A DNA stretch of 64,000 bases, taken from assembly GCA_052426225.1 (NCBI GenBank), contig JBNJNM010000011.1, forward strand, positions 1 to 64,000, written 5' to 3'. Positions 2,268 through 64,000 of the stretch are shown here, piece after piece; position 1 is the first letter of the stretch, and every line of letters starts with the position of its first letter. Origin of the DNA: Zancudomyces culisetae HAW-14-8. Taxonomy: Eukaryota; Fungi; Kickxellomycota. The position numbers and the translations under genes were made by a program. Under the pieces are notes generated by a model. It did not search any database, was not told the DNA's origin, and worked only from the letters and a program-made list of their open reading frames with translations.

Positions 2268-2300
2268 GTTTGTCAGATCAAATAATTAACTACTACTATC

Positions 2301-8006: not shown

Positions 8007-8008
8007 TA

Positions 8009-12500: not shown

Positions 12501-12550
12501 ACATGATAAGCTATCGATCTCGCGGAGCTTGATCATAAAGATGGGGGTGA

Positions 12551-13403: not shown

Positions 13404-13404
13404 A

Positions 13405-22197: not shown

Positions 22198-22605
22198 ATG
22201 AAGACCATTATAATCGGAACAGCAGCTTTGGGACTAACCTTTGCAAACAGCATGGGTGACTTGTCTTTACGCCAACACAATAGATACCCAATTGGACCAA
22301 ACAGACTTTGTTCTTGTCGAAATCGCAGCGCTAGAATGAAGGTCGAAGTGTTCAAAGAGAAAAATCTCCAAAGTCCAGGTGAAACCCTAAATATAAGACC
22401 AAACAGATGTGTTTCATTACCAAGTGCCCTATCACTTCGATTTGACGATGGACAACCAGGGCGCGGATGGGCTGCACTATGCCACAGTAATGACTGTAGT
22501 GGAAAGTGTACAACTATAAGTAGAAAAGCCTGGCTTTACCCATATGATGTGGAAGCTGACAATGTTGGAGGACCTGCAAACTCTATGATTTGGTTCCTAG
22601 CATAG
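22198..22605 (+). CDS. Small secreted Cys-rich protein, beta/gamma-crystallin-like family member 1
   Basis: Signal peptide; TATATAAA 22107-22114; motif C..S..G..CxxxDCxGxC..SxxW shared with three paralogues. Confidence 0.85.
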   Translation: MKTIIIGTAALGLTFANSMGDLSLRQHNRYPIGPNRLCSCRNRSARMKVEVFKEKNLQSPGETLNIRPNRCVSLPSALSLRFDDGQPGRGWAALCHSNDCSGKCTTISRKAWLYPYDVEADNVGGPANSMIWFLA

Positions 22606-26687: not shown

Positions 26688-27098
26688 CTAGAGAGTCCAT
26701 CCTACTGATTTTGCATAAGCACCAAGATCAATTCCTGGGATATTATCTGGATAAAGTAGAATGCTTCTAGATGCGGTAAAGCAGTGCCCTTGACAGTCTG
26801 CCTCTACACAAAACGTAATATCTCCACTTCCTGGTTTACCATCGTCCATTTTTGCACTTCCGGTACTTGGAATGTTATAGCAGCGACCTGGTTTCAAATG
26901 TTTGATTTGACTTTTCCCTTGATAATGGGTTTTACTGAAAATCTCAAGCTTCATTTTTTTTTGATGATGACAACCGCAAAGGCGGTTGGGACTGTTGTCT
27001 GCTTGTTTGTTTTTGGCAGCTTGATTTGAATCTGCGATGCTGTATGCACTGGTCATACCCAGGCTCAAGCACATCATGCTGAATACGGAGAACTTCAT
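26688..27098 (-). CDS. Small secreted Cys-rich protein, beta/gamma-crystallin-like family member 2
   Basis: Signal peptide; PNRLCGC shared with member 1; FSKTHYQG..CYN..S..CVEADCQGHC..SVGW. Confidence 0.88.
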   Translation of the reverse strand: MKFSVFSMMCLSLGMTSAYSIADSNQAAKNKQADNSPNRLCGCHHQKKMKLEIFSKTHYQGKSQIKHLKPGRCYNIPSTGSAKMDDGKPGSGDITFCVEADCQGHCFTASRSILLYPDNIPGIDLGAYAKSVGWTL

Positions 27099-31273: not shown

Positions 31274-31678
31274 ATGGTAAAATCAACACTCGCACTCTTC
31301 ACTGCCGCAGTTGCCACAGTATCAGTAAATGCTGCTGTCACCCCAAGACCAAGAGCAAATGTCGGACCTATGCAACCACCTATGGAACAGGTCCAGGACT
31401 TTGGAAGATATGCTCCACCATCTCGCCCTGCCTTTAATAAACGCTTCGCTGCACCAGCCTATCGCAAGCGTGCTGACGAGGAGGAGGAAGTTGCACCAGC
31501 TGATGATGATTCTGCTCAAACTGTTGATCCTTCAGCAGAAGGTGGTGATGCAGGAAATGGAACCGATGATCGTTGGTGGTACGGATACTACGGCTACCCA
31601 TACTATGGCGGATACTACGGATATCCATCGTATGGTTACGGTTACAGATACCCATACTATGGTGGATACTACTACTAA
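31274..31678 (+). CDS. Secreted precursor with two KR sites, an acidic spacer and a Tyr/Gly-rich C-terminal peptide
   Basis: Signal peptide, NKR and RKR sites, tail WWYGYYGYPYYGGYYGYPSYGYGYRYPYYGGYYY; TATAAAA 31119-31125; GC-rich relative to flanks. Confidence 0.88.
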   Translation: MVKSTLALFTAAVATVSVNAAVTPRPRANVGPMQPPMEQVQDFGRYAPPSRPAFNKRFAAPAYRKRADEEEEVAPADDDSAQTVDPSAEGGDAGNGTDDRWWYGYYGYPYYGGYYGYPSYGYGYRYPYYGGYYY

Positions 31679-32284
31679 CTTGCCAGTCTTTAAAACTTTA
31701 TTGGTTTTAGTCGTTACTTTAACTAATTCTAAGGGTCTTTATATATTATTTAAATAAATCATATTGAACAATATACATGAAGATAAATATATTGCTGCAT
31801 GAATCGAATATAAATTCTGAATTAGAACTTAAATAGCAATTAAATTACCAGTATCTAATTTATTCTGTTTACTAAATTAGTAATATTACCATAGGTAAAG
31901 TACACATAGTTTATTAAGATAATCGCCTTTGATCTACCTAAGGCAGAAAAGACATCATCTGACCAATTACCAGTGAGTATGCTGTCTCTAGAGTTGCGGA
32001 AACAGACTTTTCATATTATGTTTTAAGAAATTTTTTACCTACTATCTTTTTAATATTTGTGTACTTGTTGTGACATTAAATTATACTATCAACTAAAATA
32101 TACGTAAATACTAATGTTTGTGGATCATTTTGGCCTAGTTTTAAAGTAGAATATTGTAATTTATTTATGCAAAGATTGGATACTTTAATTAATCTCAGCT
32201 TTTTAAGGCTAGAAAAATAATATTTTCATTCACTAAACTTGACTCTAAAGTGATAAAATATTTGTTATAAAGGTGTATTAAAGA

Positions 32285-32680
32285 TTATTCGTTGGGGGCA
32301 GTACCCATTGACACCCATTTAATTGAAAGTGGACCAGATTTGAGATCTTCAGGGAAATTCCACATACCAGTTTGTAAAAACCTGGTATTTACTGTACACA
32401 CACCTCTACAGTCGTTTTCTCTGCATAGCAGCATTCCTCCTGATCTATTCGTGGGATTAAGAAATTGCGCTGAGGTGCCCTGCTCAATGTTATAACACTT
32501 GTGTTTTCTCATTTGGAAGTCGTTTATTACATCTCCTGAAAAGCGGTAGCCTGAGAATACTTTAACGTGTAAGGTTGGTCGAGAGGACCCATGGTGGTGA
32601 TGATGGCAATGGCCTGATACTAGCAGGGTTTGAGTAGCTGACAGAAGCTGGATAGCCAATGTATAACTTGAAACGCGCAT
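32285..32680 (-). CDS. Small secreted Cys-rich protein, beta/gamma-crystallin-like family member 3 (poly-His N-terminus)
   Basis: Signal peptide, HCHHHHH, VFSGYRFSG..CYN..S..CRENDCRGVC..SIKW. Confidence 0.87.
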   Translation of the reverse strand: MRVSSYTLAIQLLSATQTLLVSGHCHHHHHGSSRPTLHVKVFSGYRFSGDVINDFQMRKHKCYNIEQGTSAQFLNPTNRSGGMLLCRENDCRGVCTVNTRFLQTGMWNFPEDLKSGPLSIKWVSMGTAPNE

Positions 32681-38964: not shown

Positions 38965-40060
38965 ATGTCGTTCACGATTCTAAACAATAGTCCGGAATTC
39001 ATAGCAGGTAGCCTAAGTAATGAAAGCGACATGCCCAGGCATTCATTAAGTGATGTACGAATAAGACCAGCGTTTACAATTGCCAAGGAACCGCTGTCTG
39101 TATATATAACAGCAACACACCTAGTTGTTTTTTCAACTGCTCAAAACTCTGGATTTAGCATTGCCTACGACTCTATTGCTTTGTACGCAAGATCATCAAA
39201 ACAGGATAAAGTAGATTCCGAGAACGAAAATAATCTGGGAGATTGCATCTATTTACAACTAGAGCTCTCATTCTCATTCTCATCCTCTGTTCTTAACAAT
39301 GCTTCTCAAGAGGATTCCCACCTTGCAGGCAGCAGATAAAACATAAATGTCGAAAGTCTAAATGGCTCATACAATGAGGACGAGAGTGCGGATAATTCCT
39401 GGGATGAAAATCTCGAGGAGGAAATTTAATTTTCTGAATTGTTTATTTTTCACCAGGATTTGAACAAGCGTGAGTCCACTTTTTATGTCAGTCGATTTTA
39501 ACTTTTTTTACAGAGTAGCAGAAAAATACAGTTTGAGCTTTCAATTGCTAAAAATGGAATACCGATAATAGTTGATGAGCTCTACACTGCTTTATGCAAA
39601 GCAATACCCCTTCTTCCACCATCTTTTTCCGATCCCCAAGACCTTTTGGATTACCAGAATAACCAAGCATTTTCAGATACTTGTGCTCCAAATAATGAGT
39701 TTTGTCAAGTCCAAAAAGATTCAGGTATTGAGTATGATTATAAGTATGGGATGGAATCCTTAGTTCATAAGACAAACAATTCTTCAATAGGAGAAGGCGA
39801 CTTGAACACAGATAGTGGTGATTCGTCTGTTTTAAAAATTTCACTTTTAGAAGTACTCAATGAAACTGAAGCCTCTTACTTTACCGATTCTTGTGATATC
39901 GATAAATTAACAGAGGCGGGGAGGTAAGCATATATACTTTGTTCTCCTCAATTCATTTCCTATAGTATCTTAAATAAATTTTTGGTGTGCACCGTTTATT
40001 GTGATACTTAGGCGACATTAGAACGGTTAAGTAACTTACTGGACAAAGATAGTTCGTGGT
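38965..40060 (+). pseudogene. pICln/Lot5-like (Voldacs) methylosome subunit, disrupted
   Basis: GFSIAYDSIALYA, CIYLQL, acidic loop, ELFIF, DELYTALC, LTEAGR/ATLERL; introns 39470-39571 and 39924-40011; in-frame TAA at 39337 and 39427; 1-nt frame mismatch at the last intron. Confidence 0.75.
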
Positions 40061-43000: not shown

Positions 43001-43161
43001 ATTAGAATTTGAGTTCGTTATACCATACATTAGTGTGAAAACAATTTAAACTATCAGAATACCACCTCACTCAAAAGTGTGTAGGGGTAGGGTTCTCTCC
43101 TCATAATTTAAAGTACACAACAGCATTCCACCAGGAAAAAAGAAAATCAAACAAAATTAAA

Positions 43162-43623
43162 ATGTTCAAGTCAGTCTTAGTCAGTGCCTTACTTTTCGGT
43201 TCAACCTTAGCCAGTGCAGTAAACATGAGCGGTAACCAACAGAATCAAAATAATGATCTTGCTAATTCCGAACACAACAAAAATCTCTCTGGCTGTGAAT
43301 TCAACGATATGCATCGTCGCTGCAAGGCCAAGAGAACAACTGTTAGATTGTACAAGGCTGCCGGTTTTGTTAACAGATACGAAAAGCGCAGTATCAGACG
43401 TGGAAAGTGCTACAACACAAGAAAATTCGGATCAATCAAGGTCGGAAGAAAGAGTGGATTGGATAAACCAGGAAAGGGAGTAATCTTGGTTTGCGGGGAT
43501 AAGGATTGTACCGGTAAATGTCAGATAGTCCGTAGATCATCAGCCAAGACTATTTCCAATATATCCGAAGTTTTAGGAAGAAGAGCTATTTCATTCGCTT
43601 GGCTCAGGGTTAAGAGAACCTAA
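43162..43623 (+). CDS. Small secreted Cys-rich protein, beta/gamma-crystallin-like family member 4 (very basic)
   Basis: Signal peptide; LYKAAGF..CYN..S..KPGKG..CGDKDCTGKC..SFAW. Confidence 0.88.
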   Translation: MFKSVLVSALLFGSTLASAVNMSGNQQNQNNDLANSEHNKNLSGCEFNDMHRRCKAKRTTVRLYKAAGFVNRYEKRSIRRGKCYNTRKFGSIKVGRKSGLDKPGKGVILVCGDKDCTGKCQIVRRSSAKTISNISEVLGRRAISFAWLRVKRT

Positions 43624-45982: not shown

Positions 45983-46516
45983 TTAATGTCTGTGTCCGTG
46001 TCCATGTCTGTGACGCCATCTGTGGCCGTGTCTGTATCTGTGTCTTCTACCAAATCTATCAAAGTAAAAGCCATCATAGAATGGGTAGTATGATGGGTAT
46101 GTTTCTACACCAACAACTCCTACTCCACCAACGGCACCAGCTCCGTATGCAGTGTTGACAGCTCCAACTGCTCCAACGGCACCAGCATCATATGTAGTGC
46201 CAACAGTGCCAACAGCACCAACAGTGCCAACTGCTCCACTATCATATCCTGTTGCGACGGCTGCACCAGTTCCATAGGTAGTACCAACAGCTCCAACGGC
46301 TCCAACGGCTCCAACTGTAACTGGTACTGCTACTGCGTATGCAACTGGGTAATCGTACCAGATTCCATTTCTCCAGTATCTGTGTCTGTGTCTGTATCCT
46401 CGGTGGCCGTGACCGTGGCGGCCTCCATGATGTCCTCCGTGACCACCGCTACGTCCTGCAATAGCGGTTCCGGCTGAAAGTGCCAATACGGTTAGGGAAA
46501 GAGTTAATGATTTCAT
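45983..46516 (-). CDS. Secreted triblock protein: His/Arg/Gly - (GAV/GTV)n - His/Arg/Gly
   Basis: Signal peptide; low-complexity blocks with aromatic junctions; TATATAA 46590-46596 (minus). Confidence 0.88.
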   Translation of the reverse strand: MKSLTLSLTVLALSAGTAIAGRSGGHGGHHGGRHGHGHRGYRHRHRYWRNGIWYDYPVAYAVAVPVTVGAVGAVGAVGTTYGTGAAVATGYDSGAVGTVGAVGTVGTTYDAGAVGAVGAVNTAYGAGAVGGVGVVGVETYPSYYPFYDGFYFDRFGRRHRYRHGHRWRHRHGHGHRH

Positions 46517-48185
46517 TTTACTTTTTTTGAGTGGTTGTTAATTCGAGGGATAGGTTTTTCTGCTAAAATGGCAAAGAAACTAATTCCTCTTATATAGTTT
46601 TTTTTTACACTTTAGAATATCAAGATCCTAAACATACTACAACTATTGCTAATTTAGACTATGCTTTTGTTGTAAAGGAGTTGGGGTTGAGTGCTTCTAA
46701 GTTGAAATTTTTTTATAAACCACAACATCACCTTGATGGTTTATTGCGCTAACAACAAACCGTGAAAGTGTTATTTTTAGTACAAACACTATTATGGTTA
46801 TAGTACAGCCACCAAAATGCAGAACGTTTTGATTTTTTTTGTTTAACAGCTAGCCATAATTCTTAATATTTTTAAATATAATTGTAAAATACATGCTCGT
46901 ATAAACAGTCGAACACCAACATACTTGACAAATTTCAATTGAAGCATAGCTCTTGTAGAAGGTGAGCAAATGATAAAAGTAAAATAATAAATAAAATGAT
47001 AACAAGCATTCCGGAAAAAAGAAAAGAATTGAGGACAAATATTATTATTGGTTTTATAAAAGAAAAGCGTTCTAGCACTTTTAGTACAATACAGTTATTG
47101 TAAATTTGCTTCAAACGAACAATAGGAACATATAGATAACAATACAATTAAATTTTTTTATTGTATATTTACAAAATATTGTTTTTCTGACTGAGTAATA
47201 TTTATCTAGATATCAAAAAGTTCATAAAAAAAACAATCAACTAAACTAAGTTCATCGCACCTTCATTCCAACTTTCTAGAATACCAGGTATCCGAGGGAT
47301 ATTAGTTCAAGGGGAGTGGGACTACAATTAATCTTTTCACTGCTAGGTAACAAGGTGAAAAAGACTTTATTCAGAAACCTGCATGTGGAAGCCACTGCTT
47401 TAGCTCAAGAGGTCTTAGTATCACGAATAATTCCAAAAAGTTCAAGGTTTAACTCCTCCCTCCAGAAGCTTATCCATGATTTTCTTGTAAAACTCACTAT
47501 ACTCGAAAAACGTGTTAGTTAAAAAAGAACCAAAAATCTATAGATTCAAAAAGCAAATCATTCCCATTTGCTACTCATTCACTTCAATTTTGGAAATTGC
47601 CCAATTATTTCTCTTGGTTTTATTTTGTTCAAAAGACCCAATAAATAAACACCAAATAAAAATTAAATGAAACAACTCAATATAATATCAACCTAGCCAA
47701 TTCTCCTCTGTCTCTCTAGCAACTCCTTACCCACCGGGTGTTGGTTCAGTGATATTTTATACTCAAGATTGATCCAGATAATAATCCTCGTTTGAAAGAA
47801 TCTATCTAAGAATCTCGTTGTTTGCAGCTTGACTAAACATGAAATGTTGGATTCTCTATCCTTTCTGGTAGAGTAATCAAAATTTGTGGCTCTTATTTAA
47901 GAGATAGAACCAACTACCCATCCTCTCAAGTTTCATGTACTTCAACTATTTTGAGATTTGGAGTTGAAATCTTAAATGTGTTGATACTGTCATATATCCC
48001 TGGCTGCTCTATTTTGTCATTTCTCATAACCACTGATTATTTGTCGCTCCTATTTCTGGAGTATTCCATTAATAAATAATCTAAATAAATTAGCTGAACA
48101 TTAGAAAGTTAATTGATTTGCTACTAAGGTTTATTATGATTGACTTTTCAAAACCTATAAACCAAAAAAAAGATATTAAACAAAC

Positions 48186-51100
48186 TTAGTTGCTACAATT
48201 AGAAATGCTCTGGCAAGAGAATGTTGGGTTGAAAACTGATGCAGTGCCTTTGAATGGTGTCATAGCCAATGAAGTCATACTAAAGTTGGAAACCTTATAT
48301 GTGGACTTGAGCGCATTGTTGATAAATATTTGAAGCTGAGAGTTCTTGTAAACAATCTTGATGTCTTGCGAGTCGGCTCTTGTGAAAATATTGCTTCGTT
48401 TAACCAAAGCGTATTTACCCTTCTTGATGGAACTGACACCAGATGACAAACCAAATTGAGCTTCAACTACACCGTTCGGGCTGTAGAACCCGCTATCATT
48501 CATGAGCGCAACAAAGAAGTCAGTGGTAGCAGAGATGCTAGCAGTGAACTCAAAGTCACTTGTATCACATGGAATTGTAAGGGCCTGCTTGAAATCATAG
48601 TCTTTGTTCTTGTTTGTGGAAGATAAAATGATATTGGAGCCAACAGAAGCGGAATCACAGGTTGATGAGCTCGAACTGGTGGAGCTAGTTGATGAAGAAC
48701 CAGTTGATGGTTCAGATGAAATTGAGCTGGTTGATGAGGTTGAGCTGGTTGAGGTTGAGCTGGTTGATGGTTCAGATGAAGTTGAGCTGGTTGATGAAGT
48801 GGAGCTGGTTGATGAAGTTGAGCTGGTTGATGGCTCAGATGAGGTTGAGCTGGTTGATGAAGTGGAGCTGGTTGGTAAAGCTGAGCTGGTTGATGAAGTT
48901 GAGCTGGTTGATGAAGTTGAGCTGGTTGATGAAGCTGAGCTGGTTGATGGCTCAGATGGGGTTGAGCTGGTTGATGAAGTTGAGCTGGTTGAAGTGGAGC
49001 TGGTTGATGAAGTTGAGCTGGTTGAAGTGGAGCTGGTTGAAGTTGAGCTGGTTGATGAAGTTGAGCTGGTTGAAGTGGAGCTGGTTGAAGTTGAGCTAGT
49101 TGATGAAGTTGAGCTGGTTGATGAGGTTGAGCTAGTTGATGAAGTGGAGCTGGTTGATGAAGTTGAGCTGGTTGATGAAGTTGAGCTGGTTGAAGTTGAG
49201 CTGGTTGATGAAGTTGAGCTGGTTGAAGTGGAGCTGGTTGAAGTTGAGCTAGTTGATGAAGTTGAGCTGGTTGATGAGGTTGAGCTAGTTGATGAAGTGG
49301 AGCTGGTTGATGAAGTTGAGCTGGTTGAAGTTGAGCTGGTTGATGAGGTTGAGCTAGTTGATGAAGTGGAGCTGGTTGATGAAGTTGAGCTGGTTGAAGT
49401 TGAGCTGGTTGATGAAGCTGAGCTGGTTGATGGCTCAGATGGGGTTGAGCTGGTTGATGAAGTTGAGCTGGTTGATGAAGCTGAGCTGGTTGATGGCTCA
49501 GATGGGGTTGAGCTAGTTGATGAAGCTGAACTGGTTGATGGCTCAGATGGGGTTGAGCTGGTTGATGAGGTTGAGCTAGTTGATGAAGTGGAGCTGGTTG
49601 ATGAAGTTGAGCTGGTTGATGAAGTTGAGCTGGTTGAAGTGGAGCTGGTTGAAGTTGAGCTAGTTGATGAAGTTGAGCTGGTTGATGAGGTTGAGCTGGT
49701 TGATGAGGTTGAGCTAGTTGATGAAGTGGAGCTGGTTGATGAAGTTGAGCTGGTTGAAGTTGAGCTGGTTGATGAGGTTGAGCTAGTTGATGAAGTGGAG
49801 CTGGTTGATGAAGTGGAGCTGGTTGATGAAGTTGAGCTGGTTGATGAAGCTGAGCTGGTTGATGGCTCAGATGGGGTTGAGCTAGTTGATGAAGCTGAAC
49901 TGGTTGATGGCTCAGATGGGGTTGAGCTGGTTGATGAAGTTGAGCTGGTTGAAGTTGAGCTGGTTGAAGTTGAGCTGGTTGATGAAGCTGAGCTGGTTGA
50001 TGGCTCAGATGGGGTTGAGCTGGTTGATGAAGTTGAGCTGGTTGATGAAGCTGAGCTGGTTGATGGCTCAGATGGGGTTGAGCTAGTTGATGAAGCTGAA
50101 CTGGTTGATGGCTCAGATGGGGTTGAGCTGGTTGATGAAGTTGAGCTGGTTGAAGTGGAGCTGGTTGAAGTTGAGCTGGTTGATGAAGTTGAGCTGGTTG
50201 AAGTGGAGCTGGTTGAAGTTGAGCTAGTTGATGAAGTTGAGCTGGTTGATGAGGTTGAGCTAGTTGATGAAGTGGAGCTGGTTGATGAAGTTGAGCTGGT
50301 TGAAGTTGAGCTGGTTGATGAGGTTGAGCTAGTTGATGAAGTGGAGCTGGTTGATGAAGTGGAGCTGGTTGATGAAGTTGAGCTGGTTGATGAAGCTGAG
50401 CTGGTTGATGGCTCAGATGGGGTTGAGCTAGTTGATGAAGCTGAACTGGTTGATGGCTCAGATGGGGTTGAGCTGGTTGATGAAGTTGAGCTGGTTGAAG
50501 TGGAGCTGGTTGAAGTTGAGCTGGTTGATGAAGTTGAGCTGGTTGAAGTGGAGCTGGTTGAAGTTGAGCTGGTTGATGAAGTTGAGCTGGTTGAAGTTGA
50601 GCTGGTTGAAGTTGAGCTGGTTGATGAAGCTGAGCTGGTTGATGGCTCAGATGGGGTTGAGCTGGTTGATGAAGCTGAGCTGGTTGAAGTGGAGCTGGTT
50701 GAGGTTGAGCTGGTTGATGGTTCAGATGAGGTTGAGCTGGTTGATGAAGTGAAGCTGGTTGGTAAAGCTGAGCTGGTTGATGAAGTTGAACTGGCAGTTG
50801 ATGATGAATTTGCACAGATAGAATCGTTACAGTTATAAACTACATTTTGGATTTTTGCCGAATCCTTCTCAGCTCCAAATGCAAGCCATACGTTTGGTGA
50901 GTTTGTAAATGTACCTACATCATAATCAGTTGGCAAAAGTGTCAAAACTGGCGTGCTGCTTCCTACTAACCCAATACTGACTCCTGAACTGTTGACTTGA
51001 ATATATACTTTTTGGGTATCTGATGCTCCTGACATAACATCTTCTTCTTTGGAGTATACCGAAGTTCCAATGTACCACGAACCAGTGTTTACACCAACTA

Positions 51101-51407
51101 CACCCTCAACTACATCACTACCAGTGAGCAAAGATTTTTGAGCACTGATTGCAAAGTATATATCTGAAGTCTGATCAACATCAAATGTAACAAGGTAATC
51201 TTGCGATGGGCATGAAAGATCAATAGCATCGTCCCAACTGTAGCTTACAACTGGATTATCGCCGGATCCTTGTACAATTTCAATTTGACTTAAAGAGTCG
51301 GAACAGTTAACTCGCTCATTGTTTGTTGTGGTTGATCCGCCTAATATTGGTGAAAGTAAGTTGGTTAGTACTAATGAGAATAATGCTGTATATGTACTCG
51401 GCCTCAT
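48186..51407 (-). CDS. Secreted mucin-like protein: globular domain, ~720-aa Ser/Thr stalk, related globular domain
   Basis: Signal peptide; (SST)n/TPSEPS repeats; the terminal domains align with each other; no TM or GPI-like tail. Confidence 0.92.
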   Translation of the reverse strand: MRPSTYTALFSLVLTNLLSPILGGSTTTNNERVNCSDSLSQIEIVQGSGDNPVVSYSWDDAIDLSCPSQDYLVTFDVDQTSDIYFAISAQKSLLTGSDVVEGVVGVNTGSWYIGTSVYSKEEDVMSGASDTQKVYIQVNSSGVSIGLVGSSTPVLTLLPTDYDVGTFTNSPNVWLAFGAEKDSAKIQNVVYNCNDSICANSSSTASSTSSTSSALPTSFTSSTSSTSSEPSTSSTSTSSTSTSSASSTSSTPSEPSTSSASSTSSTSTSSTSTSSTSSTSSTSTSSTSTSSTSSTSSTSTSSTSTSSTSSTSSTPSEPSTSSASSTSSTPSEPSTSSASSTSSTSSTSSTSSTSSTSSTSSTSSTSSTSTSSTSSTSSTSSTSSTSSTSSTSSTSSTSTSSTSTSSTSSTSSTSTSSTSTSSTSSTSSTPSEPSTSSASSTSSTPSEPSTSSASSTSSTSSTSSTPSEPSTSSASSTSSTSTSSTSTSSTSSTSSTPSEPSTSSASSTSSTPSEPSTSSASSTSSTSSTSSTSSTSSTSSTSSTSSTSSTSTSSTSSTSSTSSTSSTSSTSSTSSTSSTSSTSSTSTSSTSTSSTSSTSSTSSTSSTSSTSSTSSTSSTPSEPSTSSASSTSSTPSEPSTSSASSTSSTSSTSSTPSEPSTSSASSTSSTSTSSTSSTSSTSSTSSTSSTSSTSTSSTSSTSSTSSTSSTSSTSSTSSTSSTSTSSTSTSSTSSTSSTSTSSTSSTSSTSSTSSTSSTSSTSSTSSTSSTSSTSTSSTSTSSTSSTSSTSTSSTSTSSTSSTSSTSTSSTSSTSSTPSEPSTSSASSTSSTSSTSSTSSTSSALPTSSTSSTSSTSSEPSTSSTSSTSSTSSTSSTSSEPSTSSTSTSSTSSTSSISSEPSTGSSSTSSTSSSSSTCDSASVGSNIILSSTNKNKDYDFKQALTIPCDTSDFEFTASISATTDFFVALMNDSGFYSPNGVVEAQFGLSSGVSSIKKGKYALVKRSNIFTRADSQDIKIVYKNSQLQIFINNALKSTYKVSNFSMTSLAMTPFKGTASVFNPTFSCQSISNCSN
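48660..50810. repeat. Coding tandem repeat (15/18-bp units with higher-order blocks) of the Ser/Thr stalk
   Basis: GTTGAGCTGGTTGATGAA units and GATGGCTCAGATGGG variants. Confidence 0.97.
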
Positions 51408-52802
51408 TTTTATGTTATCCCTTTTTATTTTATTTGAACTCTATAACTGTGCCTATATGCGGTGTATTTATTGATGACTATGAATTGTGATTGTGTATAT
51501 CTATATATTGTGTTTGTTTATATACAAATCCGCTCAGCTTTTTTTTCGGCCATGCACTTTTTATGCTACTGCATTTAATGATAATTTTTCTATGTAAATT
51601 AGCTATAATATTTATAAATCATAGCCTTTTTGTTTATTTGGATTTCACCTCTTCTATTTTTAGTTTAGAGAAAACCAATTATGAAAAGAGCCATCATTTA
51701 GGATGGAAATGAGAGAGTAATCGATTACAATTAAAGTTCTACGACAATTTTATCATGACATTTCAAATTCGACCTTTTTATATTTTACTTTGATCAGAGA
51801 ATATAATAACAGGATCAAATTGGAAATAAATGTTCAACAGTCATAATCTACTAACAACAAAATGTATTCGGGTTTATATCTTAATGCTGATTAAAGTATT
51901 TTTAGTTCTGGGGTAATGAATCAACACCGCTTCAAAATACTAATATTTTACAACAATTGTTTCAACACTTGGTAGGCATATCCCTACCTAGTAAAATAGT
52001 GATGCCAGGCCAAGAATAATAACTCATTCGTTTTCCCCTGGTAGTCTTTAAACGCAGATGCGTATATACATTCAATTACATAGGGGTTTTGCATTCAAAC
52101 ATATAACTACAGGGTCACGATTATTTTTAAACATATTAACATCTACTTATTTTATTCAAGAATCCATTTCTCAACTGAAGTTACTTACTAACCCCAACTA
52201 GCGATAATATATAACTGTTATTTGGTAGGTTAAACAAAAATGGAATTTTGGGATGGGACTGCACATAATAGTAGCGTTACGGGTTATAGAACTTGATCTA
52301 TTTTTGGTTGCTAAAAACCACTATTTAAATATTTAGTAATAAATGATATTCAGAACCAACAAACTTGTAAAAGAATTGGTGGGCTTTTCATACACCCGAG
52401 TTGTAATAATTGAGAAAAGGATTATATAAACACAAGTCTTTAAATTTTGCTTTAAACAGCCTTAGTCCTCCCACATCTAGAATTCATTCGAAAAGATTTG
52501 ATAATGGTTGCATAACTATATCGAGTTTAATGCCAAATTACGGCTATAAGGATTTTTCTTACAAGTAATTTGGCTTTTCCAGCAAATAGCTACTAATCTG
52601 TAAGTTCAAGGTATCCAATGTCTAATTTAATATTAGATAAATCTGCCCGTAAACTCCTCAGAATTATTTAGCGAATAAATTATTACCCATTGAGATTGAT
52701 AATAGTGGTAAATTTATTAATAGATAAAATTTTTTGCATATTCAGCAAATAAAAACATATGAGCACAAACAGATGACAAAAATGGAGAACAATAAACCTG
52801 AA

Positions 52803-54985
52803 TCAAAGAGTATCGGATTCGCGGCCAATAACTAAAAGTCCCGGTCGTGCAGGAGCTAGAGAGGTGACGCTCGGATTTCCATTTACATATATTGTAGATA
52901 AGCTAGGGCAATTAGAGAGGAGAGTGGAGATAGCAGAGTCATCAGTAGACCTTACAAATGAAAGGTTTAGTGTGTGTAGGTTTTTGCATGTTGGAAGAGT
53001 AACTGTCAATGGTGTTTTGAGTTGAGAGCTGTTTGTGCCTGTGTTATTTGTATCTTTGCTACTATTATTATCCTCGTCTGTGCTGGAGATAAAGGTACCA
53101 GAAAAGGCAGAAAGGCCATTGTTAGTTAAAAATTGATCTGCAGAGTGTAGACTCAAATATTGCAGAGTAGATCCAGAATGCCTGAGAATGGAAATTAAAG
53201 CTTTGTCATCAAGATCGTAAACTCCACCCAAATCCAAATGAACCAGTGAAAAACTGCTTGATTCGTTTTTCCCAGCAGAGTCAAAAAATGTCGATAACCC
53301 AGCTCCAGTTACGCTCGTGTTTTTCAGGCTGAGAGACGTGAGAGAAGTGCAGTGTGTTAGAATTCCTTCCAGTAGAACGTCGTCATTGACCAAGGAGTGG
53401 CAATTAGACAAATCCAAATCAGTGATTGTTGGGCCCAACTTCTGTAGCAATTGGATCAGTGAGGCTGGGTTGATGTGCTGATGGAGCTGGATATCACTAA
53501 GCTTCAACTTAGTTAAGGACGACATCCCATGTCTTACTAATATATCAATACAACTTTCATCAAAACGATGACACTGGGTTAGTTCGAGCTCCACTAGGGA
53601 TTTACCACAACTTTTCACCATCTCCTCCACTGCCTCAAGCCCAAACTGTGCTGCTGAAACTCTAACCTTTTTCAGACTTGACTTCAATTTTGAAAATAAA
53701 ATCCCAAACGCCTTATCACTGACCAGATAAGGTCCGTGAAGTGTAAGTTCAACTAGATCATGAAGCCTATCAGCGTAAAACTCGACAACCTGGTCTCTCA
53801 TTTGCCCACAAAACTGCAGATCTAGCTTTGTCAGATACGGGCAAAATTGTGCGATATTCAGTAACCCATTCGCATCTATTTTTGTGCAGTCATACAACAC
53901 TAGGTCCGTTCTTTGTTCCTGCGTTGGTGTTAAAAAGAGCTGAAGTGTGTCGTTATCCAAAAGCCGGTATTTACTAATAATCCTACACACTTTATTCATG
54001 GCATCTGAAGAGATATCTCCAAATGAAGTGACATCCTTTATATGTTTCCCAATTACTCGAACACATAAATCCTGCAAACTGGGAATACCCAAATCTATCT
54101 CTAATAACCCGTCTTCAGTTTTCACCACCTTCTTTTTCCGCGTTGTCTTTTTCATTCCAGTTCCGTTGTTCATCTTTGCTGTATTTGTGGCTGCTCTTAC
54201 ATTTTTTCTAAGCTGTGACACAGAACTGACTGACACGCCTTGCTTTTTTAACTCGCGATTTTGTTTCGCTTGTTCATATTTTTTCATGTACTTGTCACAG
54301 GTTGGACATAGTATCCTTCCTTTACCATTATCATCCATTGACCCTTCCCGTACCAAGAATTTAGCTTTACACATTGAACAATACTCAACGCGACCACCCT
54401 TTCTCGCTGAACTGGCGTTCAACCCTTCATTATCTCTGTTTGAGGATTCAATTCCAAGTCTTTTCTTTCTTTTGTTTCCTTCCACATCGCTTTCGTAGTC
54501 TTTTCCCTTGGATTTGCTCCCCTTTAGATCAATCTTGATTTTCTTGTTTTTACTTTTACTGTTGCTACTACGGGTTACTCTCTTTCCAATACTTGACTCC
54601 TCTAAATCCTCTTCACCACTGGTTTCCCCACTTTCAATGACATTTTGCTCCTGGTCTTCCTCCCCCTCGCTCTCATTGTTACTTTCTTGTACCTGTTGGA
54701 TTTCTTCATTTTGACCTTCGTCTCCTTCTTCCAAAACGTCATTATTTGCTTGAAACCTTTCTCGAATGCTTTCATTTGTGATTCCCTGCTCCTATTTTAT
54801 TTTAATACAAACACATATTTGATAAATTCAATTATTCTTACATACACACAAAAATATAGAAAACATCATACCCACCCCCCCCCCTTTACAAGTATATGAA
54901 GGGTATTCTAAAAGAAAACTATAAAATATACCTTTAAAAAGCTAGTAAGTGCGGATCTTGGTCCAAATACTCGGTTTCTCTTCAT
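52803..54985 (-). CDS. RAD7: Rad7/Rhp7-like LRR nucleotide-excision-repair protein (exons 54985-54932, 54791-52803)
   Basis: N-terminal GPRSALTSFL, C4 zinc motif, PSLQDLC, LRRs, C-terminal LVIGRE. Confidence 0.88.
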
Positions 54986-55437
54986 TTTTGTCCTTTTTAT
55001 AGTTATTAGTTACTTGAATTAAATGTTTATTTCGATACTTCCCCCTGTTTGTTTTCTTAAAAACTAAAACCAAGTTTTTTATTAACTATTAGTTTTTTTG
55101 TATTTTTGAAGAATAAAATGATTTTTGAAAAAATAAAAAAAAAGCTAGGTATATATGCCTGGGGAATTGATCCCTTTCCACTCACTTTCATTCACTTGGT
55201 AATGCCAACTAGTTTACTAGTGCATTTTTCGAGTGAATTATTTCCAGAATTTGTCAACTATTCACCGTAAAACAGATCACCCTCCAATTCCGCAGCAAAA
55301 CTTTCAAATGCCTTAGCTCTAAAAACATGTCAATAAACAATTTAATGTTCAATACTTTAATACTTCACTTTATTAATATAATAACACTAAAAACTATCAA
55401 CTGAATAAAACTCATTAGAAACACTGTTTATATTTTA

Positions 55438-56784
55438 TCAATTATTTTTCGACTCATTAAACCTCTTGAGTCTATCCTTGGCCAAAATATCAATAATAAA
55501 TGAACTTATCCCTCTAGCCTCGGTCAATCTGTGTTGGAAAAACTCCTTGGTTTCGTTAAATCTCTTTTCATACCCGTCAAAGCTACGTAGGTTAATACAT
55601 TGTTCCCATCCCAGTACCGACGCAAAAAACACAAGATCCTCAGCTTGTGTGTATTTATCGTTCAGCGCAGCGTTTATACTTTCATTCAAAAGATCGTCGT
55701 TGCAGAATAAGTATTCGATAATTCCCAACCACAGTCGAAATGGAGGTGTCTGACAAACTAAATGTTCATATGGATCAATATTCATCTGGTACCAACAAAC
55801 CGCTGTTGCAAGGAGCGATAGGTGTGAGTTTGGGATAGGCCCATCAATTTTGGCTTCCTTGGGCATTGCCAGTTTATCTATCACAGAATCCAATAGCAGC
55901 AAAATCCGTTTTTGAGGATCTTTTTTCGCTCGTTCAAAAATAGTTTTCTTGGTTGCCATAATAAGCTCTGTAAATTTCTCCTTCTGTCCCCCAACCATCA
56001 TTTTATAAAGCATCGTAATAGCATCGACATAGCTGTTAAGTTGTGGCTTTGCCATTGGGTTCATGATTGCCAGCCCAGAATATACATGTGATTTACTTCC
56101 ATATATATGGAGCGCTATGCTTATTTTTACATTATCTACAAAGTGGTTGAACTGTGGGTTATCCCAAGGATAGCTTTTTTGGGTTTTCCATGCGGTTCCC
56201 AGACTTAGATAACATATATGTGTTAAAGTTTGTGTGTTTGCAGTAAACTTATCGTGCTCCTCGGGTGATATAAATAACATTTCTGACTCTAAGCATTCCA
56301 AGATCTTTACTGCCTGTTGATACTTTTCTTCGGTACTTCTGCACCTTATTACTGCCAGTGTTTGACCTGTTGTATCTGCTGTTGGTCCGTGAAGTGAATG
56401 CATAGTTACTATGTTCACGTCGGCTGGTAAGTGTTCATAAAATGCCTCGACTTCAGGCGATTTAACTGAGGTTTGCCCACCTACAATTGCGCCTACTTTT
56501 GTTGATTTTCCATACTGTTTGACTACGTTATTTATGTTGGGTGCTTCTACCGAGTATATTATATAATCCGATCTCCTGGAAACCTCGTAACCATCCTTTA
56601 GTGCATATATTTTCCCTTTTAGCTCATATTTTGATTCTATTTCGCCAATAGTATCCAACAAACGTTGGTAGTTTGCTGGTAAATCGCAAATATTGACTCT
56701 ATACCCCGCTATTGCGAATTTTCTGGCATATAAAAATCCCATATCACCTGCGCCTATTATTCCTATTTCTAAACTTTCCGCCAT
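55438..56784 (-). CDS. TYR1: Prephenate dehydrogenase (fungal type)
   Basis: IGIIGAGDMG, YSVEA, GGQTSVK, HSLHGP, EHD..TANTQ, PNSHLSLL, CQTPPFRLWLGI. Confidence 0.96.
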   Translation of the reverse strand: MAESLEIGIIGAGDMGFLYARKFAIAGYRVNICDLPANYQRLLDTIGEIESKYELKGKIYALKDGYEVSRRSDYIIYSVEAPNINNVVKQYGKSTKVGAIVGGQTSVKSPEVEAFYEHLPADVNIVTMHSLHGPTADTTGQTLAVIRCRSTEEKYQQAVKILECLESEMLFISPEEHDKFTANTQTLTHICYLSLGTAWKTQKSYPWDNPQFNHFVDNVKISIALHIYGSKSHVYSGLAIMNPMAKPQLNSYVDAITMLYKMMVGGQKEKFTELIMATKKTIFERAKKDPQKRILLLLDSVIDKLAMPKEAKIDGPIPNSHLSLLATAVCWYQMNIDPYEHLVCQTPPFRLWLGIIEYLFCNDDLLNESINAALNDKYTQAEDLVFFASVLGWEQCINLRSFDGYEKRFNETKEFFQHRLTEARGISSFIIDILAKDRLKRFNESKNN

Positions 56785-57139
56785 CCTTTTACTTTATCGA
56801 AATTTTAGCAGTAGCGTGTTGAGTTGGATATTTATTTTTAAATTTCAATCTTGAAAAGTTATACATAACTAAAAATAGTATTTAGTGATTTACAAGCATA
56901 TCACCTTATTTACCACAATTGTTGTAAATTAGTCACGAAATTCAAAATCAGTCAAAAAAAAATTCGCTAAAAAGCATGATTAATGAGGAAGGGAGGGGTG
57001 AAATCTATTCCACTTTTCAAATCGATCCAGTTATTTATTTTTCATTTTTTTTATTACCACATATTTTACTTGTAGGCTTAAGCTAGAACTTTTCCAATTG
57101 TTTTGAGCAATCAGTCCAACAGTAGAATAATTTGTAGAG

Positions 57140-58037
<898 letters not shown>

Positions 58038-58436
58038 TTTTATGTTGTTACTTTTGTATAATTTAGATTTTTGTACTGATTATTTCGCTCTTGTGACTAA
58101 AAAATGATATGACTCCTCAGTGTTCAATTCATTTTTGTACTATGTCTAGAGTGGTTGTGGTTCAGTCGGCTTTTATTTTTTTTATTTTATGCGGTATTAA
58201 GCGTTTAATTAACTGGTTAGTTACTAACGGCTGATAATAGAAATGAAATAAAATAAAATAAAATGAGTCAATAAAATTACAAACCAACTCATAATTCAAA
58301 TTTAATTTACATTTTTTAATAAATCGAAAAAAAAAAAGTTTTGTTTATTGATAAAAGCGTTACCTACAAACATATAACCTCATAGATTGAATTCAACAAA
58401 CCAAAAAGGAAAAAGAAAAGACCGGGACAAAGCAAA

Positions 58437-59776
58437 ATGAGCTCATTTGGAACCATTTATAAAGTTAGCACATTTGGCGAGTCACACTGCAAGGCTGTAG
58501 GCTGTATAGTCGATGGTTGCCCACCAGGAATGGCACTGCAAGCTGAAGATATTCAAAAGCAGTTAGATCGTAGAAGACCTGGGCAAAACTTTCTCACAAC
58601 ACCAGTAAGTATACTTGAATTTTTATCACTTAGCCAGCAATATATGTTTAATAAGTGAAAACCAATTAAAACACACTGAATAGCGTTCGGAAACAGACAC
58701 AGTAACAATCTTGTCGGGAACAGAAAAGGGGTACACCCTAGGGACACCAATAGGGTTAATGGTCCCAAACAAAGACCAGAGACCTGGGGATTATAGCGAA
58801 ACCGACTTGTATCCACGACCTTCGCACGCGGACTGGACCTACTTGAAGAAGTACGGCATAAAAGCATCTTCAGGAGGAGGACGATCAAGTGCGCGCGAAA
58901 CAATCGGGCGTGTTGCAGCTGCGGCAATTGCAGAGAAATACATGAGCCTTGCTCATGGAATAGAGATAGTAGCATTTGTTAGTGCAGTAGGCAAAGTAAA
59001 AATGCCATTCCTCAAGGACGATGGTAAAAATGAGCAGAGGGATTTGCTGCTGAGCGAAATCACCCGTGAAAAAGTAGATGTTTTTCCTACAAGATGTCCA
59101 GATTCTGAAACTAGCAAGCTAATCGAAGAGGAAATCGCTAAAAAGAAAGAGGAGATGGATTCTGTTGGTGGCATTATTACATGTGTTGTGCGCAACTGTC
59201 CACCTGGTTTGGGTGAACCATGTTTTGACAAGCTTGAGGCAAAATTGGCTCATGCAATGCTATCTATTCCAGCAACCAAAGGGTTTGAAATAGGTTCTGG
59301 TTTCCACGGAGCTGAAATGAGCGGAAGTGTTCATAACGATCCATTTGCTTTTTCAGGAGAGCGTGAATTACAAACAACCAAAAACGACTCTGGAGGTATT
59401 CAAGGCGGAATCTCGAACGGTGAAACAATATATTTTAATGTTGCCTTCAAGCCTGCTGCAACAATATCTTTGGCACAAAAGACCGCTAAATATGATGGGG
59501 AAGATGGTGTTTTGGCAGCTAGAGGAAGACACGATCCATGTGTAGCAATTCGTGCAGTTCCAATTGTTGAGTCCATGGCTGCATTGGTCATTATGGAGTA
59601 AGTCCTTTATATTTTTTTTTTCGTGTATGAATATCGATGATTTATTTATTCGACTAAACTATGAATATATTACTAAAGTATATTAATATAAAATCAATAG
59701 TGCGTTGATGCTCCAAAACGCAAGACAATCCTCCTCTTCCATCTTTTTTTCTGAAAAAAATATGCATGCTCGTTAA
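58437..59776 (+). CDS. ARO2: Chorismate synthase (exons 58437-58604, 58684-59597, 59701-59776)
   Basis: [50 protein letters not shown]. Confidence 0.98.
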
Positions 59777-59885
59777 ATAAGATTTATTTAAAGTTTCATG
59801 TTATATTTGTTTTTTATCATTTTTTTTTCCAGAACTTTCCCCATGTTTGTTAATCTGACTCTTTTTTTTTAGCGAAAAATGCCTT

Positions 59886-61606
59886 TTACTTTGAAAAAAC
59901 TAAGGACTTCAAAAAAATATCAATTCTTTGGTACCCATAAGCTAAATAATCAAAATCTATGGTACTGTTACAAGCCTGTAATAATCCCCAAAGTCCCCAT
60001 TGCAAATGGATTAATGGAACTAGATCCATCACTTTTTGGTCCAATGCCTCCACCCGTTCATTAGTCGTTTTTTTCACTGCGTTCGTACTGCTACTAGGCG
60101 ACTCTATTATTTTTTTCTCTTCAAAGCTTAATCTTATGACATTGTTTAGCTTGATATATTTTTTTATAAACTCCACTCTTTGTTCTTTTGTTGGGAATAG
60201 ACTCTGGTCCAAACGGTGTGGTGTTTCGCTACTGTAGTTGGCCATCCATTCTGTAAAATGATTCGCAATATCTGCTGCACGGTAGTTATGTCCTGAATAC
60301 TCAAAGTCCACTACCATTAGGTCCTTTGTTTTTTCCAACTCCAAGATATTTCCGTACTGTAAGTCATTATGAGCAAGCACCACTTCATCTCTCAATATAG
60401 CTTTTGTGTATGTTTCAGTGATTTTTCTTTTGTATTCTTGATACTTGGATATTATTTGGTCAAACTCGGGTCCATCCATTATGTTCTTTTCAACCTCTTT
60501 GTTACCATTCATAAGCTCCATTATCACCTGCTTCTTCCCCTCAACAAGTTTGATCCAACTATCTATATTTGCCCATATTGCCAGCTCATTCTGGTCCACT
60601 CGCTCATCCACCAATTCGCCCTCGACTAAATGGAAATTTTCTTTCTTTGGTTTTGGAATGAACTTCACCAAGTTGTGTAACTCACACATCCGCTCTGCTA
60701 TTTTTCCGCTTGTTTGCTCGTCTCTCAAATCCAAGAATCCCAGAGTTCTGCTCTTCAAGAATTCCTCCAGTCTTCCATTTCCAAATGCACCAAATACACG
60801 CGCTCCTATTCCCAGTTCTCCCAATTTTTTCATCCAGTATAGCTCCTTTTTTCTTTCTATTATTTCGTCCACACCACTTCCGTATATCCTCAGTAGGTAT
60901 GTTTGAGGTAATAAAACAGTAGGTTTTAGTGTACCTGACCCTGTTACATTCTCCAATAGCGGTGGTAGTCTGTGCGTTGAACTTATGTGCACCATCCTGT
61001 TCAGTTTTACCAAATATACAAGGTTAGTGAGTGCACTACTAATCCTGGTAAGTTGAATCTGATCTTCACTTATAAGTGCTGCTGGAAACAGTATCTTGTT
61101 CATTACACCTGCTACCTTTTCTCTCAGTTCTTTTTCCTTGGATATTTCGCTAATTATTAATCAAGTATAACCGAATCGATATTAATTCATTGGCCTACCA
61201 AATGATGGAATTTGTATTTGTCTCAAACCTTCGTATATAAATTTATTGAGATTGTAAGCTTGAAAATTTCTTACCTCACTTCAATTACATCAGGAATGCT
61301 TGCTGGTTCCTTAAAAAATAGGTCCAACTCATCCATCTTTACGTGTTGCTCATTTAGCATAGATGCCGTCCCAATATCCTTTCCTGGCGATAACTTTTTC
61401 TCTCTCTTTTCGAGGTACATCTTTTGCTGGTGCATTTCGACCTCTTCGTCTTCTTCATTTTCCACTTGCTCAGCTACATTTACCTCTTCTTTTTTTTCTT
61501 TAGAGATTTTTCTGGCTTTGTACCTCATTACTATCTCAAAGTACCCTGGCCACTTTACTTTTTTTTTTGAATCAAATACACTCTTTCCCAAGCTTAGTTC
61601 ATCCAT
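59886..61606 (-). CDS. Choline/ethanolamine kinase (probable intron 61150-61274)
   Basis: SALTNLVY, LLRIYG, FGNGRLEEF, HNDLQYGNIL, VDFEYS, DIANHF.EW, WGLWG, DFDYLAY. Confidence 0.93.
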
Positions 61607-63283
61607 TTCTATTCTGTAGTATAATACTTTTCTAGTTTTCAGAGTTACTTTATTTTATTATCGTGTCCAAGTTTTAAATATATATAAATTCCATAACTAA
61701 ACTTTTATGTAAAACTTGTGGTACTCTTTATGAGTTTATTTTTTTCTCCCCCTTTCTTCAACTCACCCACACCCCTAAGTTTCAAACTAGAACACACCAA
61801 ACTACATCGTTTTTTCCATCTATTCCGATTTTCAACCGCTGAACCAGTCATCTTGAGTGTCCAATACCTTCCCACTTCTTTTTTTATTTACCAACCAACA
61901 ACCCCAAGTAATTCAAATTACATTTGAAAGGTCATGTTAAAAAAACATTTTCATGATTGACCTTAGGTAATGGTCTTGTTTTCCGCAATGCTAATCAACA
62001 ACACAGCTTTTTCTTTGCCTACAAGCTTTGAAACCTCTTAACCACACATTTGGATTTAAAATTGGATATATAATCCAGATCTTTATGCGAACACCACTAC
62101 TCTTAACAAACAAAGTAAAAATCTACATGTATCATGTTTTTCTTTACTTGGTTACCTTGGTATGTTTGGTCGTATTAATTTCTTTATAGAATTGTTAAAC
62201 GATTTTTTATTTGATCTTTGTCTGCTTGCGGATAAGGTTTGGATCGACAATTCTAGAATTTTCTTTCGTTTATACATGGACATTTCTTTGACTTGAATAA
62301 AGTAAATCAAAACTAACGGAATCTTTCACACAATAAGTTTAGGCAAATTAACCATGTAGGAAAAGATTTTATTTGGCCAAGTATCCAGGCAGAGTTTGTG
62401 TCACGAAAATCGTCAACAACCTTAATCCTTCAAAAATCCACAAATGTCAATTTCCCTCTCTCATTACACTGTTATTCCGCTATTGCGAATCGCTACAAAC
62501 ACAAATACATATAATCAATACGCAATATTTAAAGTTTACCAAAAGTTTGTTAATTTTAGCCAAAAATAATAATAATAAACTGGCTAGTTAGTGTTTCGTT
62601 TACAAGTTCTGATTTCAAAAGTACCACCAAGTCAACGCTTCTTTGTATTAGTACTACTCCTCTCCCATGCGTGTAAAAAGACACGAGTTAATTGAAATTT
62701 TTATCCGTATCACTACCATTAAGATATTACTACATCTTTATGAACTAAGTATAGCTTTATATTTAAAAAAATTTTTTGGTAGATTGATAGACCCATTTTT
62801 TATATGACATCTTGGCTTTTTAAATATATATACGTATTACCCAGGAACATGGTTAAAATTAAAATATTAGTGAATATGCCTTTTTTGATAAGCATCAAGC
62901 TCAAGGATTCATACACTTGGTTGGGATAGGGGTGAATCCACCACCCTTTTTTTACAACTTCTCTTTTTTTTTAATACGATATTTTAAATAACTTTTAACC
63001 TGTATGAGCCCACTACATATCTTTACTTCAACATTATTTATTAACTATATCATCCCCCATTAAAAGTACTATTAAGTATATTCGGTACTATGCATTTAGA
63101 AAATACATACAAGTGTCTATATTGGTGTATCATACTTTATACATACCAACGGGTTTTTTCTCTTGATAGTATAAAAATATGTGTATTCTATAGAGTGATA
63201 TACCTTCATCATTGCATTAATAGTCGAATGGAATGCATGTAAAGTTGACATCTATATTTTTGCACGCCATTGTGGTTGTTAAG

Positions 63284-63700
63284 CTATACTTTCTTACGCT
63301 CAAGTTCTTTACCAACTTCTTCATCTAGTTCCTTTTTATCAAGATATCCTACAAATCTCTTGAAATTACTTTCACTGCCGTTGTGGTAAACTACAATGGT
63401 TGGATAGCCCACAGTCACAAACCGCGAACATATTGCCGCCTCTTCATCGCAATTTACTGTTGCAAACATAATCCTTTTTGCAGTTGAACTCAGTCTATTG
63501 GCAAGATCGTTAAACGACTTTTCCATCATTTGACACCCTCCACACCAGGGGGTTCTGTACTCGACAACAGCACCGCCTGTTGCCCATTTTATTCTTTCAC
63601 TAAAATTGGCCTTCGTGAGTTGTTCAACATTGCTTGGCTTCCCGCCTAATGTCGTGTATACAGATGTAGTTACTATAATTATCTTTGCAAAAAGTCTCAT
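63284..63700 (-). CDS. Single-domain secretory thioredoxin/PDI-like protein (WCGGC)
   Basis: Signal-like N-terminus, EYRTPWCGGC, ATVNCD, GYPTI. Confidence 0.88.
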   Translation of the reverse strand: MRLFAKIIIVTTSVYTTLGGKPSNVEQLTKANFSERIKWATGGAVVEYRTPWCGGCQMMEKSFNDLANRLSSTAKRIMFATVNCDEEAAICSRFVTVGYPTIVVYHNGSESNFKRFVGYLDKKELDEEVGKELERKKV

Positions 63701-64000
63701 TGTTGTGGATGTTGTAGTTGTGCTGATTTAAACAGTGGACTTATTCACTAACATTTATACAAATTAATTTGTCTTGGAAATGTGCTTTAATAAACACCTA
63801 TTCCAGAACTGGATACATATTCGAGATGTATGTTAAGTTTAATATTTTAATATAAAATTGTGATTTACTCATCCTCACTTCACTCCCCACCCTTCCTCTC
63901 ACCCCTATTCTCGTTTAGAGCATTGGTGCAGAGCTCCAATATTGTCAAATGAGAAATAGTTTTTTTTAGGGGGCTAGTGCTTTTTCAATTTTGAATAACA

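Follow-up and report, generated by a model that had tools for sequence, protein, structure and literature searches.

Secreted-protein genes near a telomere of the insect-gut fungus Zancudomyces culisetae lie in a block copied among chromosome ends, next to ordinary core genes

Do genes for secreted proteins that stand side by side near a chromosome end of a gut-dwelling fungus work together, or were they merely copied together? The question is raised by the left end of contig C11 (positions 1-64000, a 64-kb stretch hereafter called the window) in the 27.1-Mb, 25-contig assembly of Zancudomyces culisetae, a member of the Harpellales found attached to the lining of the hindgut in larvae of mosquitoes and other aquatic insects (PMC12611240). 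The fungus attaches by a secreted holdfast glue, and spores of the Harpellales release glue in the gut (PMC5954228). The original prediction had listed eight features between positions 31274 and 63700, namely a Tyr/Gly peptide precursor, an atypical cytochrome P450, a poly-His secreted protein, a triblock protein, a two-headed mucin, TYR1, ARO2 and a thioredoxin, and had taken them for a candidate locus of a secreted, cross-linked biomaterial. Reading of the open reading frames (ORFs), Pfam matches and motif checks confirmed all eight at their positions; missing from the list were a choline kinase (59886-61103), a leucine-rich-repeat (LRR)/Rhp7-like gene (52803-54734) and the multi-copy nature of the region from 31 to 51 kb. 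We show here that the region is the junction of a subtelomeric repeat block with the chromosome-specific core at the C11 left end. Taken as a whole, the reading that a copied subtelomeric block of secreted-protein genes here abuts ordinary core genes is one that we consider probable. In the literature on the Harpellales that we searched, we found neither a subtelomere analysis nor a description of such a block.

The window opens with the telomere repeat (CCCTAA)n, which occupies positions 1-1690 and decays into CCCTAT units (direct reading; GC skew -0.92), and therefore the eight features lie 31-64 kb away from the chromosome end. Base-by-base alignment showed that positions 19613-50672 are collinear with the left end of C13 (92.7% identity over 31.4 kb), positions 19613-47569 with the right end of C21 (94.9% identity), and positions 188-7151 and 13404-47751 with the right end of C7 (92-95% identity), which likewise terminates in the telomere repeat. 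The intergenic spacers between the block genes show 93-97% identity across the compared ends. Because the block of about 50 kb, spacers included, has been copied among ends at 92-95% identity, its genes travel together, and this duplication is a sufficient explanation of their co-location. The argument that led from the co-location to a functional link thus fails.

The copies are spread over most of the chromosome ends. Among the 22 close copies of the Tyr/Gly gene (at least 87% identity), at least 20 lie within 65 kb of a contig end, at about 19 ends, and one further close copy lies 64 kb from the low-coordinate end of C16, while only about 12% of the genome is found at or within 65 kb of an end. 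Every non-housekeeping gene of the left half is multi-copy in the genome. We conclude that segmental duplication or ectopic recombination has carried a block of about 50 kb to most chromosome ends, and that its genes belong to lineage-specific multigene families: Tyr/Gly prepropeptides, crystallin-like proteins, triblock proteins, mucins with lectin-like heads, and a divergent P450. An assembly artefact was also considered as the source of the copies and was rejected as unlikely, because the copies differ by 5-8% and are joined to different core genes.

Starting at the telomere, the block reaches to about 51 kb, and patchy duplication continues as far as 56.6 kb. A DNA self-search with positions 46600-64000 showed that the mucin gene and both ends of the LRR gene are multi-copy, and it found no second genomic copy beyond position 56567. 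The last duplicated segment before the core (53858-56567, 2.7 kb) recurs at 97% identity in the right subtelomere of C13 (C13:1998498-2001205); it includes the N-terminal portion of the LRR gene and, from about codon 73 on, TYR1 (prephenate dehydrogenase; 55438-56784, reverse strand; best match among solved structures, E 5.6e-7), and the C13 copy is accordingly a truncated TYR1 lacking the NAD-binding start. Since this segment ends within TYR1, the gene sits on the edge of the duplication-prone zone. From 56568 to 64000 follows the chromosome core (Pfam, ORFs), made up of a deaminase-like gene (57291-57575, forward strand) with the cytidine/tRNA-adenosine deaminase motif HAE...PCxxC, which is the sole gene between TYR1 and ARO2; ARO2 itself, for chorismate synthase (58437-59601, forward strand; E 5.7e-103; like the deaminase-like gene it contains introns, and the searches used unjoined exons); the choline kinase (reverse strand; Pfam); and a thioredoxin with a hydrophobic N-terminus (63284-63700, reverse strand; E 9.5e-20).

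At the three other ends compared the neighbours are different: the block abuts a zinc alcohol dehydrogenase gene on C13, genes for WD40, NPL4, BCS1 and aldehyde dehydrogenase on C21, and a pentatricopeptide-repeat gene on C7. TYR1, ARO2, choline kinase and thioredoxin are thus ordinary core genes, and only the C11 left end has them beside the block. As to the closeness of TYR1 and ARO2 to each other, by a rough estimate chance alone would bring two aromatic-pathway genes so near in about 1 of 20 genomes.

The copied genes are real genes under purifying selection and not decaying repeats, as pN/pS (the ratio of nonsynonymous to synonymous differences) between ends is mostly 0.1-0.3. By family, the Tyr/Gly gene ranged over 0.09-0.25, the poly-His gene over 0.07-0.44, the P450 over 0.22-0.28 and the triblock gene, whose core varies in length, over 0.12-0.30; across all families the range is 0.07-0.44, and most copies are intact and a few are broken. 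The proposal of a locus for secreted material therefore holds in part: the left half carries a genuine secreted-gene set under purifying selection, but to conclude from co-location that it is a functional unit is not justified. When positions 31274-32680 were compared with the paralogous ends, synonymous divergence was 0.13-0.18 in the Tyr/Gly gene and about 0.10 in its crystallin-like partner, higher than the plain divergence of 4-7% in the flanking intergenic DNA. This excess may point to older alleles that were shuffled or to spacers that were homogenised.

The Tyr/Gly gene (31274-31678, forward strand) encodes a prepropeptide of 134 amino acids with a signal-peptide-like start, a pro-region containing RKR, an acidic spacer and a tail. 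The tail comprises the 34 C-terminal residues, 18 of them Tyr and 9 Gly, and is nearly uncharged, with a single Arg. The dibasic site at residues 65-66 is invariant in seven aligned family members, and across seven aligned diverged paralogues YRKR followed by ADEEE, TDDRW ahead of the tail, and the signal peptide are all invariant. The family has 38 genomic matches, corresponding to about 30 copies, and 32 loci were used for the partner count given below. A word search found no relatives of the Tyr/Gly protein outside Z. culisetae, and an exact-protein look-up of it and of TYR1 gave no match. One paralogue in the draft genome (P0004) is laid out like a kexin-processed polyprotein: two modules follow each other, and each of them has RKR, an acidic spacer, DDRW and a Tyr-rich tail.

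Kexin is encoded by one gene in the genome and tyrosinase by 7-9 genes (at least 7); a genome-wide search placed none of the tyrosinases in the window, and the smallest distance between one of them and a Tyr/Gly copy is 23 kb, on C10. Since the secreted families are intact, the fungus makes a holdfast glue, and both tyrosinases and kexin are encoded, a Tyr-rich secreted material is chemically plausible. The precursor would enter the secretory pathway and be cleaved by the single kexin after the invariant RKR; this cleavage would free the acidic spacer bearing the Tyr-rich tail, which may then join the wall or the attachment matrix, and if oxidative cross-links form, they would be the work of tyrosinases whose genes lie at other places in the genome. 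The Tyr-rich peptide freed by kexin is in this sense a candidate component of wall or glue.

Tail to tail with the Tyr/Gly gene, about 1 kb away, lies a gene of the crystallin-like family. This pair was found at 26 of the 32 Tyr/Gly loci, including all 22 of the close copies, and it persists in several more distant copies, at 62-78% and 46-53% identity; in an older short-read draft the same pair appears as neighbouring locus tags on one contig. Among the eight genes no other linkage is conserved from copy to copy: of the 22 close Tyr/Gly copies, no more than 8 have the P450 within 10 kb, and for TYR1, ARO2 and thioredoxin the linkage to the block exists at one end only.

In the window the partner is the poly-His protein (131 amino acids; 32285-32680, reverse strand), in which HCHHHHH stands just past the leader. 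The run is present as had been reported, but it is not a fixed trait of the protein: close copies (L002, L006, L019, L042) have 5 His, 8 His or RHRHH in this segment (32585-32620). Other members carry Arg-rich dibasic runs or a Gly(/Arg) run in the N-terminal linker. A distant member has a 7-His run of its own at the same linker position. The family has 111 genomic matches, and the window holds three further members identified by alignment, two of them small secreted proteins (22198-22605, forward strand, with 99-100% identical copies at three other ends; 26688-27098, reverse strand) and one basic (43162-43623, forward strand). In 23 aligned members four Cys, a Gly, a Ser and a Trp are invariant.

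The poly-His protein is predicted to have the double Greek-key beta/gamma-crystallin fold. Its AlphaFold (AF2) model has a mean pLDDT (predicted local distance difference test) of 80, with 86-96 in the core; all of the top 50 Foldseek matches were beta/gamma-crystallins, and VIA structural alignment to crystallins gave Z of 8.0-8.5 with a root-mean-square deviation of 2.5-3 A over about 80 residues. Read by eye, the first Greek key keeps [FY]xxxx[FY]xG and the structural Ser, and the second reads CxxxxCxG. Neither Crystall nor any other Pfam family matched the protein at E <= 0.01. A word search with it returned Z. culisetae proteins only, and a profile search of 1.84 billion representatives returned 35 proteins of the family, of which ten were looked up: six were from Z. 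culisetae and one each from Smittium mucronatum, S. culicis and Furculomyces boomerangus. By these searches the family appears restricted to the Harpellales.

The divergent P450 (35009-36688, reverse strand; Pfam PF00067, E 2.6e-29) keeps its Cys ligand in the loop WGAGNRVCLA (residues 493-502) and its ExxR as ETIR (417-420), and both are kept in three paralogues. It had been called atypical, and rightly so: the I-helix reads GVEVA, with Val for the usual Thr, and PEIF stands for PERF, both features being common to the three paralogues. The protein carries an N-terminal membrane-anchor-like segment. Its best solved relatives are CYP24A1, CYP11A1 and BM3 (E 1e-10 to 1e-9, C-terminal half only), and a word search in which 8000 candidates were scored returned Z. 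culisetae proteins only. We counted 16 close copies at 82-98% identity and about 12 more distant ones.

The triblock gene (45983-46516, reverse strand) encodes a secreted protein that by its composition has Gly/His/Arg-rich ends around a Gly/Val/Ala/Thr repeat core. About 15 copies were found, about 10 of them close and 5 diverged; no relative was found in Pfam, and an Atlas search gave no usable match.

The mucin (48186-51407, reverse strand) consists of a stalk that is 94% Ser, Thr and Pro between two end domains, and the earlier description of it as two-headed proved correct in that these domains are homologous (24% identity, E 8e-7). The head domain has 32 genomic matches in at least 25 copies, some with two or three per ORF. 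Foldseek with a model of the head gave CBM40 and galectins at E 2e-5 to 1e-3 with template-modelling (TM) scores of about 0.5, and also GH16 enzymes, and the heads are thus predicted to be concanavalin-like (lectin-like) beta-sandwiches. An Atlas structure search with the head gave TM 0.62 to DM9/PF12248 proteins. For the N-terminal head (50838-51407), the nearest proteins in the language-model and structure searches of the ESM Atlas were arthropod and mollusc proteins with PF12248 (FAMeT/DM9). Z. culisetae has been reported to carry a mosquito-like ubiquitin gene (PMC5026252). The assignment of the heads to PF12248, as a host-derived domain, was dropped since profile searches gave it no support: they did not find PF12248 in the mucin heads, and their galectin match, at E 0.041, fell short of the cut-off. 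None of the families that the head resembles in structure was backed by a profile match.

Mucin-head and LRR/Rhp7-like genes adjoin at no fewer than eight places in the genome, both subtelomeric and interior, among them the window (48186-54734; the LRR gene, assigned by Pfam, is on the reverse strand), C13:1716-1721k, C6:1242-1247k, C14:350-356k, C9:840-844k and C12:1093-1098k. In the window the LRR gene contains, midway along, about 550 bp that are missing in all other copies.

The first 20 kb of the window contain retroelement remains. They include a full-length Ty3/gypsy retrotransposon (7211-13406, forward strand) with long terminal repeats (LTRs) of about 800 bp each at 7211-8006 and 12608-13406, intact gag and pol ORFs, and Pfam matches to gag, reverse transcriptase, RNase H, integrase and chromo domains; both LTRs align to one and the same subject segment. 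As the element is absent from the collinear copies at the left end of C13 and the right end of C7, where the alignment jumps from 7151 to 13404, it is a recent insertion private to the C11 left end. Inside the repeat block, positions 38965-40060 hold a pICln-like (Voldacs) fragment (Pfam E 1.7e-9, first ORF).

Several points weigh against the reading of a copied block of secreted-protein genes. The base-by-base comparison covers four ends, and the presence of the block at the remaining ends is deduced from the coordinates of protein matches. Signal peptides were assigned by eye and without a predictor. The model of the mucin head has a pLDDT of 65 from an alignment of four sequences, and so has moderate confidence. 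The persistence of the Tyr/Gly-crystallin-like pair in diverged copies could reflect a true two-gene function and not mere co-duplication. Finally, the functional half of our statement, the repertoire at the fungus-gut interface and the role in wall or matrix, is something that we infer.

What might the block be for? One answer, which we regard as unlikely, is an arsenal for antimicrobial defence or competition in the gut, in which the tail peptides, the triblock and the basic crystallin-like proteins would act on bacteria or rival fungi, and the disulfide-bonded crystallin-like proteins would be akin to the killer-toxin-like beta/gamma-crystallins of yeast and Streptomyces. Nematodes, insects and plants have antimicrobial peptides that are rich in Gly/Tyr or in Gly/His. 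The precursor has an acidic pro-piece, kexin sites and a peptide to be released after them; many crystallin-like members, too, have dibasic sites just ahead of a basic four-Cys domain, and their family is massively expanded, diversified and found in the Harpellales only. However, the tail, with its one Arg in 34 residues, is unlike typical cationic antimicrobial peptides, and killer toxins accounted for none of the 50 best structural matches of the poly-His model.

Distinctly doubtful, in our judgement, is the proposal that a subset of the block, comprising the Tyr/Gly peptide with its crystallin-like partner, the triblock and the lectin-headed mucins, supplies the holdfast or trichospore glue of the Harpellales. 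If true, the subset would be a fungal Tyr-rich wet adhesive that is cured by tyrosinases from other loci and owes its diversity to subtelomeric recombination.

Less likely than an antimicrobial role, and very unlikely in itself, is that the Tyr/Gly gene encodes a precursor of a ribosomally synthesised and post-translationally modified peptide whose aromatic core is cross-linked by the neighbouring P450, after the manner of biaryl-peptide P450s or of DIT2 in dityrosine formation. In yeast, building of the spore wall involves Dit2, a P450 by which tyrosine derivatives are coupled. The precursor does combine a leader, a kexin site and an aromatic core, and the P450, which retains its Cys ligand and lacks the usual I-helix Thr, stands 3.3 kb from it at 8 chromosome ends. 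But 14 of the 22 close Tyr/Gly copies do not have this P450 in their neighbourhood, and 8 of the 16 close copies of the P450 are interior, away from any Tyr/Gly gene. The membrane anchor would usually put the catalytic domain on the cytosolic face of the endoplasmic reticulum, whereas the precursor would be luminal. Nor was a homologue of DIT1 or UstYa detected: DIT1 (PF05141) had no match in the genome and likewise none in the control genomes, and UstYa/DUF3328 (PF11807) was not found in the genome by a search that had no positive control.

To the claim that all eight genes form one system making a Tyr/His-cross-linked adhesive, holdfast or spore coat, with a glue peptide, a P450 oxidase, metal-binding blocks, a mucin linker, Tyr supply from TYR1 and ARO2, and redox control by thioredoxin, we give next to no credence: all its parts do lie within 32 kb, the fungus does make a holdfast glue (PMC5954228), the secreted families are under purifying selection and a single gene separates TYR1 from ARO2, but of about 19 ends only 1 has the housekeeping genes next to the block and three other ends have unrelated neighbours, linkage between the P450 and the Tyr/Gly gene is lacking in most copies, the His run differs from copy to copy, no upstream k-mer (promoter motif) is common to eight secreted-family genes beyond shuffled controls, and block duplication fully explains the co-location. 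The eight-part model is thus not supported as a unit.

What takes the place of the "glue operon" is a block of about 50 kb that sits at most chromosome ends and is packed with orphan secreted families under purifying selection. Under this copied-block reading, the families likely form a variable repertoire at the interface between fungus and gut, in which the lectin-headed mucins are probably the most conventional candidates for adhesins. The glue idea stays open for single families and not for the locus, and the analysis offers a short list of candidates for holdfast or spore wall: the Tyr/Gly peptide with its crystallin-like partner, the triblock and the lectin-headed mucins. A warning goes with it, as co-location inside subtelomeric repeats is not evidence of a functional cluster.

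How do these genes compare with known systems? Mussel foot proteins and preCols and the His-rich proteins of squid beak resemble them only in composition and layout, with no sequence homology: both sides have a Tyr-rich secreted peptide and His-rich ends around a Gly/Ala/Val-rich core, and tyrosinases are present in the genome. Unlike in the animal wet adhesives, no oxidase is encoded in the block. Protein S, spherulin 3a, clostrillin and the killer-toxin-like proteins share with the crystallin-like family a secreted single domain of two Greek keys and the signature of the first motif; the family differs from these microbial beta/gamma-crystallins in its second signature CxxxxCxG, its four invariant Cys, its variable linker with His, Arg or Gly runs, and its lack of a Pfam Crystall match.

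The Tyr/Gly precursor resembles the KEX2-processed repeat proteins (KEPs) and the dikaritins (ustiloxin, phomopsin) in being a secreted precursor with conserved dibasic sites before a Tyr-rich core, and the two-module paralogue adds to the likeness. By definition a KEP is a secreted protein with three or more repeats flanked by KR or RR, and Tyr-rich KEP peptides occur in another early-diverging fungus (PMC6339444). The Tyr/Gly precursor has one core, rarely two, and thus falls outside this definition, and its core is a low-complexity stretch of 34 amino acids and not a short motif as in KEPs and dikaritins. In contrast to dikaritin clusters, the block has no tyrosinase, and UstYa was undetected in the search mentioned above.

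There are parallels, too, to subtelomeric gene families of other fungi, the FLO/PAU genes and Y' elements of S. cerevisiae, the EPA genes of Candida glabrata and the MSG genes of Pneumocystis. The gene content of the Z. culisetae block is unrelated to theirs and lineage-specific. In organisation they are alike: in each case a telomere-adjacent block recurs on many ends at high identity, carries expanded families of secreted or Ser/Thr-rich adhesin-like proteins with retroelements and pseudogene fragments mixed in, and meets the unique core of the chromosome at a sharp junction.

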